This document shows positions 2,290-5,756 of a DNA stretch of 64,000 nt, piece by piece; the stretch's first letter is position 1; the number at the start of each line of letters is the position of its first letter. The translations under genes and the position numbers were made by a program. Under the pieces are notes generated by a model. That model was not told where the DNA came from and ran no database searches. It saw only the letters and a program-made list of their open reading frames with translations. The stretch lies in sequence record KX397371.1. One strand, given 5' to 3'.

Positions 2290-3129
2290 ATGAGAAAGGT
2301 GCTTTTCGGAATACTTGCAGCGTTGACGTTTAGCATGTCCGCAGTCGCGGCAGACGAAGTAGTGATTACCACAGGACAACAGGGCCTGACCTATAACTCG
2401 GTCTATGGCGTTAATCTGGCCGGTGCCATCAGCGAGTTCGGTACTCGTGCACGGGTCATCCCGTCGAAGGGGTCGTTAGACAACCTCGACAAAGTTGCCG
2501 CCGGTGAAGCCCAGATTGGTTTCACGCAGGCAGATGCTTTCCAGTTCTGGCGCGCTAAGCACCCGAACGAAGCGCAGAACGTTGACATCGTCGGTCAGCT
2601 GGCCCGTGAATGTGTCTGGGTCGCTGTCAAGAAAGATGGCAAAGTTAAAGATGCGAAAGATTTAACCGATGGCGTGAAAATCGCAGTCGGTGAACCGGAC
2701 TCTGGCTCCTACGCCAGTTGGCAATATCTGCAACAGTTGGTGAAAGAGTATTCCAAAGCGGAAACTTACGCCAAGGGCGGCATCCGTTCGTTGTCCAAAG
2801 TGGCAACGGGTGAATACGACGCATTCCTGTGGGTATCTGCGCCGGATAAAAGCAACAAATTCCTCGAAGCGGTCAATCAAGACAGTTCTGGTTTAGAGCT
2901 GATTGACATGAGCACATGGAACGTCAACGACAAACTGCCTAACGGCCAGTCTGTGTACACGAAAGAAACGGCCAAGACAGACAAGACCGCGTTCTTCGGT
3001 AAGAAAGTTGATGTTCCGTGCACCACCACACTCGTCGTGGCCAACACTGACGCTGGTGATGATCTGCTCGAAACCGTTTCTACCATCCTCCTGAAAAACA
3101 ATTCACGAGTGATGGGGGACAAAAAATAA
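2290..3129 (+). CDS. TAXI-family TRAP solute-binding protein
   Basis: N-terminal signal peptide (…MSAVAA/DEV); ITTGQQGLTY, SKGSLDNLDKV, IGFTQAD and AVGEPDSGS motifs fit the TAXI fold. Confidence 0.8.
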   Translation: MRKVLFGILAALTFSMSAVAADEVVITTGQQGLTYNSVYGVNLAGAISEFGTRARVIPSKGSLDNLDKVAAGEAQIGFTQADAFQFWRAKHPNEAQNVDIVGQLARECVWVAVKKDGKVKDAKDLTDGVKIAVGEPDSGSYASWQYLQQLVKEYSKAETYAKGGIRSLSKVATGEYDAFLWVSAPDKSNKFLEAVNQDSSGLELIDMSTWNVNDKLPNGQSVYTKETAKTDKTAFFGKKVDVPCTTTLVVANTDAGDDLLETVSTILLKNNSRVMGDKK

Positions 3130-3135
3130 AAATAT

Positions 3136-3735
3136 GTACTGACCCAGTGCATCTTTTCGGGCTGGGTAGGGTTAATGTCCCTACCTGCGCGGTGTTCGTT
3201 AAGGCTGGTAACGTTCGCTAAGACCTATCGCATACCCGTAAGCCGATAGCAGCCGGTTACACAAAGAACTATCCATGTGGTAGGTAACCGACCGTTCACG
3301 ATCTCATTAGGTGAGCAAATAATCTATGCAAGGACTTCTAGGATTTGTGCTCGACATGATGGGCAGCTTACGCCGCCTCATCAAGCAGTTACGAATCTGG
3401 AAGCTTGCCCATTACTGGTTTACAGGCGAAAAGGCATCTCGTGAGAGTGTGCCATGCAAACTGCGTATTTACATTAGTATGTTCACTGCGGTGAGCATAG
3501 GTCAAGCCCCGGAACGATAAGCCGGTCAGCTACGCCTGTAAAATACAATCTGAAAATCATAATGGGATTAAGTTCCCAGATTTGAAAAGGCGACTGTGTG
3601 TCGTCGGCGATAACCCCCCGTCGTGGACTCGGTTATCCCAAAGGTAATGTGAAAGGGGTTGGTGCTTGGAGACGCTAAGACCGGCGGATACGCTGGCTCA
3701 GAAGAAGAAGTCCATCAACCCCGTTCTCACCTGAG
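3136..3735 (+). ncRNA. candidate large ornate non-coding RNA (~600 nt)
   Basis: Region without a credible CDS, starting at a TATG; more than 10 stems including long-range 3419-3428/3533-3542, 3655-3663/3714-3722 and 3307-3312/3729-3734, plus loop pseudoknot GGACTTC/GAAGTCC. Confidence 0.7.
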
Positions 3736-3744
3736 TAACACCCT

Positions 3745-3767
3745 TTACAAGGCGTTACTTATATATG
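3745..3767 (+). promoter_or_regulatory. middle/late-type promoter (TTAC-N15-TATG)
   Basis: TTAC 3745-3748 and TATG 3764-3767; same spacing as the other copies. Confidence 0.55.
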
Positions 3768-3789
3768 CGAAAGCGAGGTGAACATGGGA

Positions 3790-4110
3790 ATGTATCGTGA
3801 AGGCCCTGAAAGCACGGTGAGTCACCGTAGTCATGATTACTCTGTGGATGCATTGCTGGATATAGCGGAACGCCATAGCCTCGTTCAAATTCCAGTGTCT
3901 AGAATAGAATGGATTTTAAACGAGACTACGCTCGATGACGAGCGGGTTAAGAATGCAGATACGGATTATCCAATAATCGTGCTGCACGAAGGAAGTTTGT
4001 ATATTGTATTAGACGGTGCCCATCGCCTTGCGAAGGCGGTAGCCGAAGGCAAAGACACCATCGCAGCCAAGATATTGGTGCCTGCGAATTTACCGAAACC
4101 GGTACGATAA
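3790..4110 (+). CDS. ParB/sulfiredoxin N-terminal-domain protein
   Basis: YPIIV...VLDGAHRLAKA matches the ParB/Srx DGxHR motif; GAGGTG SD 9 nt before ATG 3790. Confidence 0.7.
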   Translation: MYREGPESTVSHRSHDYSVDALLDIAERHSLVQIPVSRIEWILNETTLDDERVKNADTDYPIIVLHEGSLYIVLDGAHRLAKAVAEGKDTIAAKILVPANLPKPVR

Positions 4111-4116
4111 AAGTCT

Positions 4117-4141
4117 AATTACAAGTTTACACTGTATTATG
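4117..4141 (+). promoter_or_regulatory. middle/late-type promoter driving the tRNA/ncRNA cluster
   Basis: AATTAC 4117-4122 and TATG 4138-4141; upstream AAAGTCTAATTACAAG is identical to the promoter at 834. Confidence 0.7.
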
Positions 4142-4223
4142 TCGGAAACCCGATTTGATGTTGCACAGAGCGTTACGCTGCGGCGTTTGCTGGTGTGCAG
4201 GGTTAGGTCGGGATTCTGGCACC
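4141..4223 (+). ncRNA. rod-like small RNA ending in ACC
   Basis: Starts at the predicted +1 G; 4141-4156 pairs with 4205-4220 (one mismatch); TGCAC/GTGCA inner stem; followed by ACC. Confidence 0.5.
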
Positions 4224-4228
4224 TATTT

Positions 4229-4314
4229 GGCGGGTTACTCAAGCGGTCAACGAGAGCAGACTGTAAATCTGTTGCCTTCGGGCTTCGTAGGTTCAAATCC
4301 TTCACACGCCACCA
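4229..4314 (+). tRNA. trnY: tRNA-Tyr(GTA)
   Basis: Class II cloverleaf, CTGTAAA loop, long variable arm, CCA; G5·A68 and T·T mismatches. Confidence 0.9.
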
Positions 4315-4320
4315 AACAAT

Positions 4321-4538
4321 GGTACCTGTCACAGCAGCCCTTGAGGCTTACGCGATGATGACTGGTCGCCCATTTTACCGGGTAACACATTCCTGCCAGC
4401 GCGCTATTGCCGCGAAGGTTTGCCCCCGGTGTTGTGCGTTATTCGGGTCTACCCACCATCTGCGGATGGTGCGTTGATGTCTCGATATACGCCATAGGGA
4501 CGCCTTGAGAACTCCGTGAAATTCGGAGAGGTACCACC
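4321..4538 (+). ncRNA. tRNA-like acceptor/T module enclosing a ~180-nt structured insert
   Basis: GGTACCT (4321-4327)/AGGTACC (4529-4535) followed by ACC; adjacent 5-bp stem with 7-nt loop CTCCG-TGAAATT-CGGAG. Confidence 0.6.
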
Positions 4539-4540
4539 CA

Positions 4541-4609
4541 TTCTTGTGTTTCCTTATCCTGAAGACATTCGTAAGACAAATCCATTCATGGTCGAGGAAA
4601 CACAGAACC
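4541..4609 (+). ncRNA. small RNA element copy A (paralog of 5843-5913)
   Basis: 13-bp closing stem (1 bulge) TTCTTGTGTTTCCT/AGGAAACACAGAA then CC; interior shares TCCYGAA-GACATTC...CATGGTC with copy B. Confidence 0.6.
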
Positions 4610-4615
4610 TATTCA

Positions 4616-4691
4616 GGTGCTATCGTCTAGTGGCCGAGGATACTACCCTGTCACGGTAGAGACCGGAGTTCGATTCTCCGTAGCACCGCCA
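4616..4691 (+). tRNA. trnD: tRNA-Asp(GTC), copy 1
   Basis: Cloverleaf GGTGCTA/TAGCACC, CTGTCAC loop, GCCA end. Confidence 0.95.
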
Positions 4692-4699
4692 TTTTAAAA

Positions 4700-4775
4700 T
4701 GCGTCTTAGCTCAGTTGGTAGAGCGCTCCCCTGATAAGGGAGAGGTCACTGGTTCAAGTCCAGTAGATGCAACCA
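4700..4775 (+). tRNA. trnI: tRNA-Ile(GAT)
   Basis: Cloverleaf TGCGTCT/AGATGCA, CTGATAA loop, ACCA end. Confidence 0.95.
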
Positions 4776-5582: not shown

Positions 5583-5588
5583 AACAAT

Positions 5589-5680
5589 GGCTCCGTAGCT
5601 AAATCGGTAGAGGCAGACTTTAATTAGTTCTCCAACGATTTTATAATCGCGTGGTGTAGGTTCAAGTCCTACCGGAGCAA
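5589..5680 (+). pseudogene. degenerate tRNA with two central hairpins and no CCA
   Basis: GCTCCG/CGGAGC acceptor and perfect T arm GTAGG-TTCAAGT-CCTAC; broken D stem; no 7-nt anticodon loop. Confidence 0.55.
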
Positions 5681-5756
5681 GAGCACTGCTGTTAAGTTGG
5701 TTAACACCCGACCCATACTCGGATATTCGCACGTTCGATTCGTGCCAGTGCTCGCC
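5681..5756 (+). tRNA. atypical tRNA with CAT anticodon (Met/Ile2-like)
   Basis: 8-bp acceptor GAGCACTG/CAGTGCTC, 5-bp D stem GTTAA/TTAAC, CCCATAC loop (C33), canonical T arm, G-CC end. Confidence 0.7.

Follow-up and report, generated by a model that had tools for sequence, protein, structure and literature searches.

GOLLD and ROOL are phage-borne RNAs that are often encoded at transfer RNA (tRNA) islands and for which no protein partner is known (bioRxiv 10.1101/2024.12.08.627333; PMC5737381). Here we describe a comparable element in the Erwinia amylovora jumbo phage vB_EamM_Parshik (KX397371, genus Machinavirus). The window analysed is the whole 64-kb stretch at the left end of this genome, and its coordinates are those of the KX397371 record. 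The element occupies ~570 nucleotides (nt) of the plus strand, from ~3163 to 3722-3734. It resembles GOLLD and ROOL in its length of hundreds of nt, its many covarying helices and its phage-encoded position at a tRNA island. It differs from both in being carried by jumbo phages of Enterobacterales and in containing a conserved open reading frame (ORF) that looks translated, neither class having been described as coding, and it is shorter than GOLLD, in which lengths above 800 nt are common. Its kind, the large structured RNA of a phage tRNA island, is known; what is new here is the family itself and the selected reading frame embedded in it.

Several other systems share individual traits with this element. 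The tRNA cluster of phage T4 yields two stable non-tRNA RNAs, species 1 and species 2, which are processed together with the tRNAs; these are ~120-140 nt long and non-coding, and are set apart here by description, not by sequence. In transfer-messenger RNA (tmRNA), helices and pseudoknots surround the reading frame, the gene lies among or resembles tRNA genes, and the ends are made by tRNA-processing enzymes. The likeness to tmRNA consists of a structured RNA with an internal frame and a stop codon in a hairpin loop, whereas the ORF of the element has its own AUG and Shine-Dalgarno (SD)-like motif and runs over 55-64 codons, compared with 10-30 codons in the tmRNA tag. The hok mRNA likewise combines a small ORF with covarying long-range helices and a sequestered translation start; the Parshik element differs from it by a 3' domain with long invariant unpaired runs and by its setting in the tRNA island of a lytic phage. 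Dual-function RNAs such as SgrS/SgrT, RNAIII/hld, SR1/SR1P and AzuCR join an RNA role and a small protein in one transcript (PMC12612679). Those are base-pairing small RNAs of 100-500 nt with modest structure, whereas the Parshik element has an ornate multi-domain fold, and its ORF overlaps covarying helices.

An initial annotation of the window had proposed a large multi-helix RNA adjoining the phage tRNA cluster, and comparison of homologues supports this proposal and shows the RNA to be conserved in evolution. The same annotation considered membership in the ROOL or GOLLD class, which is not supported, as neither covariance model (GOLLD, RF01998; ROOL, RF03087) matches in the window or in five homologues. 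Under Rfam 15 at gathering score, the window contains ten tRNAs only. The covariance search that had been recommended places the element in no catalogued family even at E<=10, with zero matches inside 3136-3735 (2900-4700 searched) and only tRNAs or look-alikes in five divergent homologues. It had also seen no RNase P CR-I/CR-V, tmRNA ends or group II D5, and our Rfam and ARAGORN results agree that the RNA is not RNase P RNA, tmRNA or a group II intron. Within the element ARAGORN detects neither a tmRNA nor a tRNA-like gene, and a tRNA-like domain, a T arm and a CCA end are all lacking; the lone tmRNA-family match in Rfam at E<=10 (4636-4700) lies on a tRNA outside the element. RNase P models give no match at E<=10, and the GAAGUCC complement is present in some lineages only. 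Models of group I and group II introns have no match either, and neighbours on both sides vary between clades; because the flanks differ in this way there are no exons, and the element is not an intron. It is therefore extremely unlikely that the element belongs, in divergent form, to a catalogued family (ROOL, GOLLD, tmRNA, RNase P RNA or group I intron). Like many ROOL and GOLLD RNAs, it adjoins tRNA genes (bioRxiv 10.1101/2024.12.08.627333); it places its stop codon in a hairpin loop in a way that recalls tmRNA, and GAAGAAGUCC loosely recalls RNase P CR-I, but Rfam 15 gives no match inside it at E<=10 across the window and five homologues of different clades, and ARAGORN reports no tmRNA. 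GAAGAAGUCC is one of the invariant runs; the idea that it is equivalent to CR-I was dropped for want of conservation in alignments inspected by eye. A literature search turned up no description of this locus.

The distribution of the element is confined to one group of phages. A blastn search of 50,697 phage records found it in 48, all of them ~240-kb jumbo phages of Erwinia, Salmonella, Escherichia or Proteus. By blastn alone, just the 3' 230 nt initially matched in Seoulvirus and the distant genera, while an nhmmer profile recovered the whole ~540-575-nt unit at every locus (Machinavirus, Seoulvirus including SPN3US, phiEaH2-like phages and uncultured contigs), for a total of ~14 lineages with 50-85% nucleotide identity. 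The clade with the element coincides with the jumbo phages that carry a neighbouring HslV-like gene. Invariant-motif pattern scans (three of IMG/VR, one of JGI metagenomes) and protein-guided look-ups gave new lineages from this clade only; the candidates L028, L030, L031 and L032 were rejected as chance pattern matches within unrelated sequence. Against all complete Escherichia coli genomes, blastn returned zero matches for the element, which is thus not a host-RNA mimic at the sequence level.

In every lineage the three parts (5' domain, ORF and 3' domain) co-occur with fixed order, spacing and boundaries. The genes on both flanks change between lineages, and a tRNA, an HNH gene or a ParB-like gene may come next; in phiEaH2-like phages, a tRNA gene begins 5-7 nt past the terminal helix P14. 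The SPN3US-like jumbo phages (Seoulvirus, Machinavirus and phiEaH2-like) probably carry the locus as a single conserved gene module. This arrangement bears on the idea that three adjacent, independent products are cut from a tRNA-island precursor, namely a ~140-nt 5' RNA, a small mRNA and a ~200-nt 3' RNA. Such a division would suit the first blastn matches to the 3' 230 nt alone in distant genera, the small stable RNAs released from the T4 tRNA cluster and the suspicion, voiced in the initial annotation, that 3136-3300 is a separate RNA. We nevertheless consider it quite unlikely, as order and spacing are constant in all lineages though both flanking genes change, the long-range helix P7 links the ORF interior to sequence past the stop codon, and the 3' tail pairs with the SD region.

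The evidence for a conserved RNA structure comes from comparison of the homologues. Folding of 3136-3735 is better than that of dinucleotide shuffles (z = -5.4), but the minus strand folds equally well (z = -5.5), which makes folding energy uninformative by itself. A structure of 97 pairs in 18 helices was drawn on Parshik coordinates and counted over a MAFFT alignment of 28 sequences, the alignments being guided by sequence; as controls, the 3' partners were slid by 1-3 columns, and 500 shuffles were made. Cells were paired in 89.4% of cases in the named structure, compared with 31-42% in the slid controls, and 42 of the 97 pairs showed compensatory changes, compared with 10-16. The covariation score was 0.304 against ~0.05, and none of the 500 shuffles reached the three observed values. 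Because of this excess in pairing and the 42 compensated pairs, the structured RNA is real; a lack of covariation, named at the outset as grounds for discarding the RNA, is not what the alignment shows. RNAalifold predicted 26 pairs in the 5' domain, with compensatory changes in 20, and 44 pairs in the 3' domain, with compensatory changes in 15. The best-supported helices are P1 (3163-3187), P3b (3225-3249), P4/P5 (3254-3290), P12 (3589-3605), P14 (3655-3722) and P15 (3681-3696). Compensatory evolution maintains three folded parts: the 5' multi-helix domain, the central junction and the 3' domain. A covariance model of the 5' domain recovered two lineages kept out of its construction, L042 and L043, at E 1e-25 to 1e-29, and it found a single copy in the window. 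With 181 G-U cells, pairing is 89.4% on the plus strand and 84.5% when read as minus; the plus strand is favoured by these G-U cells and pairing, by the orientation of the tRNAs and by the ORF.

The element contains a single GenBank feature in Parshik, the hypothetical protein gp9 (PARSHIK_9), which corresponds to ORF 3326-3520. All 28 distinct homologues, and two further lineages besides, keep this ORF open over 55-64 codons, and it ends at the same UAA in every case. An invariant Trp codon follows the AUG at a distance of 18, 22, 23 or 25 codons, depending on the clade, and every change in ORF length is thus in frame. Within the ORF span of the 28 sequences there are no stop codons in frame 0, compared with 69 in the +1 frame (in 27 sequences) and 57 in the +2 frame (in 28/28). 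In the Machina group, the ratio of nonsynonymous to synonymous polymorphism (pN/pS) stands at 0.15 for the ORF frame, compared with 2.79 and 1.56 for the shifted ones; counted by site, 15/25 changes are synonymous, where 22% is expected (p=4.6e-5), and the shifted frames give 2/25 and 4/25. For the N-terminal part in the deeper groups, pN/pS is again lowest in frame 0, at 0.41-0.55 against 0.57-1.26. A purine-rich SD-like motif (GGUGA / GAUGAG / ACGAGA) lies 6-11 nt 5' of the AUG in every lineage. Judged by these patterns of substitution, the ORF is kept open and is under purifying selection. The initial annotation had seen no credible coding sequence here, a view refuted by the frame being open in all lineages, the in-frame indels and the synonymous excess; it had named protein-level conservation of ORF 3326..3520 as an observation that would count against its proposal, and such conservation is found in silico.

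The protein has no relatives outside the clade in Pfam, PHROGs, PDB, 5.8 billion clustered proteins or 1.8 billion representatives; two long repetitive protein matches in the database searches were discounted. AlphaFold predicts a helix at residues 2-33 with a predicted local distance difference test (pLDDT) score of 80-87 and has low confidence for residues 36-64, and at a mean pLDDT of 66 the model is not strong enough to be searched by fold. Charged residues occur all along the N-terminal helix, which is hydrophobic to amphipathic, and no uncharged stretch of ~20 residues was seen by eye. The conserved part of the protein is the helix together with a Trp-rich motif, while in its tail the RNA largely sets the sequence. 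Conserved helices or loops take in the SD-like motif and the opening codons as well as the final third of the ORF and the stop codon; that final third lies inside the central junction (P7-P10).

On balance, the locus is probably one unit, a new structured RNA family that also encodes a real small protein. Two properties of a dual-function RNA are present: structure is kept beyond coding needs, in domains outside the ORF, and the ORF is under protein selection. A purely non-coding ornate RNA, as proposed in the initial annotation, would make the ORF an untranslated accident of RNA constraints. The strong covariation over the full length, inside the ORF too, speaks for such an RNA; in the C-terminal half (CAAGCACCGGCCCAUUAA) the third positions of codons are invariant, which indicates constraint at the RNA level, and the low AlphaFold confidence at residues 36-64 is of a piece with this. 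This explanation is nonetheless unlikely, as the N-terminal part, variable as RNA, is still open with its AUG in frame at four lengths, the synonymous excess is confined to the ORF frame while other frames have stops in nearly all sequences, and an SD-like motif stands ahead of each AUG.

The opposite explanation, which we regard as rather improbable, is an ordinary small-protein gene whose 5' and 3' structures act only in cis, in translation control and in nuclease protection within a heavily processed tRNA-island transcript, the RNA having no function of its own. It draws on the same ORF evidence (the open frame, in-frame length changes and synonymous excess), on the sequestration of the SD motif and start codon by P6 and Pv together with the complementarity of the Parshik 3' tail to the SD region, and on the stable terminal stem P14 that closes the 3' end. 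The pattern of conservation speaks against it. The N-terminal part of the ORF is the least conserved RNA stretch (44% identity, 5/75 invariant columns), whereas the 200 nt past the stop codon are the most conserved, and the 3'-terminal domain reaches a mean identity of 74% with 41/85 invariant columns, many of them unpaired. From 74% against 44% identity it follows that the 3' domain of the RNA is under stronger constraint than the protein. Moreover, at least 15 helices, a GNRA hairpin and invariant single strands are seldom needed by stabilisers acting in cis.

A further alternative is a hok-like type I toxin mRNA, in which a membrane-active peptide is silenced by an mRNA fold with 5'-3' fold-back and activated by 3' processing. 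The small ORF within a covarying, long-range-paired mRNA, the SD region of Parshik that is complementary to the 3' tail, and the hydrophobic to amphipathic N-terminus all recall this system. It is very unlikely here: no uninterrupted hydrophobic segment of transmembrane length was seen (by eye; no predictor was used), an antisense RNA gene is not evident, with minus-strand promoter-like matches at chance level, and Rfam gives no match. In addition, the 5'-3' pairing is not kept in Seoulvirus or phiEaH2-like phages, and the setting is the tRNA island of a lytic jumbo phage.

Several points weigh against the reading of the locus as a structured RNA with an embedded protein gene. The evidence base is sequence comparison and prediction, function is read from anatomy and position only, and all homologues belong to one phage clade of ~14 lineages. 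On the side of the RNA, relatedness inflates the shuffle control, the G-U pairs discriminate moderately between the strands, and P7 (in the main clade), P10a and P11 are among the key helices without any variation. On the side of the protein, the SD spacing in Parshik is long (11 nt), the coding signal is strong among close relatives (the Machina group) only, and in the deeper groups it is weak in the C-terminal half, where RNA constraints could hold the frame open. The net charge of the protein is ~+1 to +6 by hand count, hence it is not uniformly basic.

The features of the element are collected in Table 1.

Table 1. Coordinates and composition of the features of the Parshik element, in order along the plus strand.
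Feature	Coordinates	Strand	Description
P1	3163..3187	+	Hairpin of 9 base pairs (bp), conserved 7-nt loop YUGRURU; compensatory changes in 5/9 pairs, 92% of cells paired
5' multi-helix junction	3189..3295	+	P2 (CGGU/ACCG) encloses an optional hairpin (3194-3216), P3 and P4/P5
P6	3303..3315	+	Weak hairpin; loop and 3' strand hold SD-like AGGUGAG, 11 nt before the AUG
Small ORF	3326..3520	+	64 amino acids, PARSHIK_9, PHROG 26199; N-terminal helix; C-terminal half encoded by structured RNA
Pv	3328..3407	+	Long irregular variable hairpin of the N-terminal coding part; GCAAG (codons 1-3) pairs with CUUGC (3403-3407)
Central junction	3419..3542	+	Closed by long-range P7 (3419-3428/3533-3542)
3' domain, first part	3547..3605	+	AAUCUG/CAGAUU round P11 (GGGA-UUAAGU-UCCC), then P12 (GGCGAC-UGUGU-GUCGUC)
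P13	3609..3637	+	Variable hairpin; three alternative cassettes, mosaic among lineages; both main types pair
3'-terminal domain	3655..3722	+	P14 (GGGGUUGGUG.CUU / AAG..CAUCAACCCC) encloses P15 (CCGGC/GCUGG)
3' tail	3723..3734	+	CUCACCUGA, complementary to SD region UUAGGUGAG (3307-3315)

The initial annotation had listed complementary segments throughout 3136-3735, all of which are present where it placed them, and comparison of the homologues now separates the conserved from the local. It had the RNA start at TATG (3133-3136); this motif and 3136-3162 are kept in the closest relatives only, and the element begins at ~3163. Compensatory changes confirm the stems GGTAGGG/CCCTACC (3165-3185) in P1, CTATCG/CGATAG (3225-3249) in P3 and CGGTTAC/GTAACCG (3254-3290) in P4. 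P3 consists of GCU/AGC and CUAUCG/CGAUAG with a 13-nt loop, and P4/P5 of CGGUUAC/GUAACCG and CUAU/GUAG with the internal loop ACAAAGMA. Within this 5' junction, compensatory changes are seen in 6/7 pairs of P3b, 4/7 of P4 and 3/4 of P5, with 97-99% paired. Three other ideas were dropped after inspection of the alignments by eye: the P1 loop as an anticodon mimic, since its triplet varies (GAU, GGU, AAU), an L1-L3 kissing interaction and a T-box-like UGGN, the last two being not conserved.

Downstream, Pv joins the first codons at its base to codons ~26-28, and this closure recurs in each clade with a different sequence. Equivalents of the closing helix are present in all lineages, for example GCAUGAAAUAC/GUAUUCAGUCAUG in Seoulvirus, GCGUG.../...CACG in SNU29 and GAGC/GCUC in phiEaH2; the folding energies of Pv are only 1-4 standard deviations better than those of shuffles. 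Two elements predicted in this region are local. The stem TGGGCAGCTT/AAGCTTGCCCA (3360-3411) is not conserved, being found in the Machina group only with 56% of cells paired. The pseudoknot GGACTTC/GAAGTCC is missing in Seoulvirus and phiEaH2-like phages and limited to the Machina and SNU4 groups, in which the ORF begins MQGL...; the 3' side of the pseudoknot does not vary, which leaves no covariation by which to judge it.

The central junction contains the GNRA-capped P8 (3433-3453), P9 (3483-3494) and P10 (3505-3531). Its closing helix P7, described earlier as a 10-bp pairing of TTTACAGGCG and CGCCTGTAAA, is kept in 22/28 sequences, where it is invariant, and is replaced in the phiEaH2 clade. 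There, an interrupted helix of GGUUAU-CAGGAU-GUGGG with CCCAC-AAUCUG-AUAACU closes the same domain instead of P7, with compensations of its own (GGUUAG/CUAACU and GGUUC/GAAUC). P8 changes from CUC-GUGA-GAG to CCC-GUAA/GCAA-GGG and, in the phiEaH2 clade, to GGAC-GAGA/GCAA-GUCC, keeping the GNRA cap in all clades, and P10 shows the pair change CGG/CCG to CAG/CUG. The stop codon UAA (3518-3520) sits in the loop of P10, a CCGG/CCGG hairpin.

In the 3' domain, P11 is invariant and 100% paired, and P12 has compensatory changes at 4/6 pairs. The predicted stem GATAACC/GGTTATC (3609/3637) covaries, as part of the variable hairpin P13. The cassettes of P13 are mosaic, as in the Machinavirus pSal-SNUABM-04, which has the Seoulvirus-type GGCGCGGUACCUCAUACGGCCGGUACGCC; this suggests recombination between lineages. 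The stem GGGGTTGGT/ATCAACCCC (3655-3722) corresponds to P14 and was likewise upheld by compensatory changes (4 pairs in P14, 2 in P15, with 95-99% paired). The 3'-terminal domain, the most conserved part of the element, also holds the invariant unpaired runs GGUGCUUGGAG and GAAGAAGUCCAUC. The closure between the 5' and 3' regions, predicted in the initial annotation, is present and in fact comprises 9 bp in Parshik (3307-3315/3726-3734); it is partly kept in other groups and not conserved in Seoulvirus or phiEaH2-like phages. A nonamer, GCUAAGACC, occurs twice (3217-3225 and 3674-3682), with one copy in each of the 5' and 3' domains and both directly ahead of a hairpin, and may be a repeated structural or binding module.

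The element lies between gp8, a TAXI-like solute-binding protein gene (2290-3129), and gp10, a small ParB-like gene (3778-4110). The Parshik tRNA cluster follows a short way downstream with every tRNA on the plus strand; ten tRNA genes in the window flank the element, and the tRNA-island setting is common to all relatives. The gp8 gene shows 79-87% identity among jumbo-phage lineages, compared with 52-66% for the adjacent RNA, and ~70% identity to genes on many 35-60-kb viral contigs without the RNA; it looks like a transferred accessory gene. A linkage of gp8 and the RNA was considered and rejected, because a scan of 67 viral loci having a gp8 homologue with the 5'-domain covariance model found the RNA at jumbo-phage loci alone. 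On the 3' side, the next gene varies between a faint HNH_3 Pfam match (L042, 3535-4056), a ParB-like gene (the Parshik group and L043) and a tRNA directly (phiEaH2-like phages), and the 3' end of the element seems to be a junction for insertions.

Further observations concern the surroundings of the tRNAs. Directly 3' of the element, CTTATATATGCGAA (3756-3769) is kept in the Machina and SNU4 groups; its octamer TATATATG (3760-3767) also precedes a tRNA in L021 and overlaps an ORF start in the SNU4 group, and these sequences could be a promoter or processing signal. A recurrent promoter based on TATATATG or TATG was rejected, as the octamer occurs only once in the 64-kb window and TTATATG is not enriched, and a scan for sigma-70 promoters and terminators gave matches at chance level only. 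Before the tRNA-Tyr, a non-coding leader of ~100 nt (~4120-4228, TTATGTCGG ... GGCACC) is common to Machinavirus and Seoulvirus in the alignment. The tRNA at 4228-4315 is labelled tRNA-Asp(gtc) in GenBank and tRNA-Tyr(gta) by ARAGORN; relatives annotate Tyr there, and the GenBank label is probably an annotation error. The 'tRNA-Ile(aat)' at 5588-5681 is unusually long (94 nt), scores 31.4 bits in Rfam against a threshold of 29, and may be an aberrant or degenerate tRNA.

Returning to the structured RNA with its embedded reading frame, we postulate the following course of events. The RNA would be made within or beside the tRNA transcripts, and RNase P would trim its 3' end where a tRNA abuts. 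Because folding and translation would exclude each other, the ORF would be translated just while the nascent RNA is unfolded. The mature folded RNA would then act in trans, probably complexed with a partner, for which the most economical candidate would be the RNA's own helical protein. Its position and the analogy with GOLLD and ROOL suggest translation or the tRNA machinery during infection as a target. The function in trans, the trimming by RNase P and the binding of the protein to its own RNA warrant less confidence than the core statement, and this too weighs against the reading as a whole. Taken to its full extent, the model would describe a new class of phage ribonucleoprotein: an ornate RNA that encodes its own helical protein cofactor, is freed from the tRNA island like a tRNA, and acts on host or phage translation and the tRNA machinery in nucleus-forming jumbo-phage infection, translation of the internal ORF switching the molecule between mRNA and folded states. 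We offer this extended model as possible but doubtful.

For annotation, the finding corrects the entry of Parshik gp9 as a 'hypothetical protein' and fills a locus that is without any annotation in SPN3US and many relatives. The occurrence of GOLLD and ROOL at phage tRNA islands is a standing puzzle, to which the element would add a third, unrelated class, with the twist that a conserved reading frame is threaded through its covarying helices. Two questions thereby become directly testable in laboratory Salmonella or E. coli hosts, namely the role of such RNAs in infection and whether selection may act simultaneously on one molecule's fold and on its service as an mRNA; SPN3US, which carries the element, has a genetic system with amber mutants (PMC5105663).

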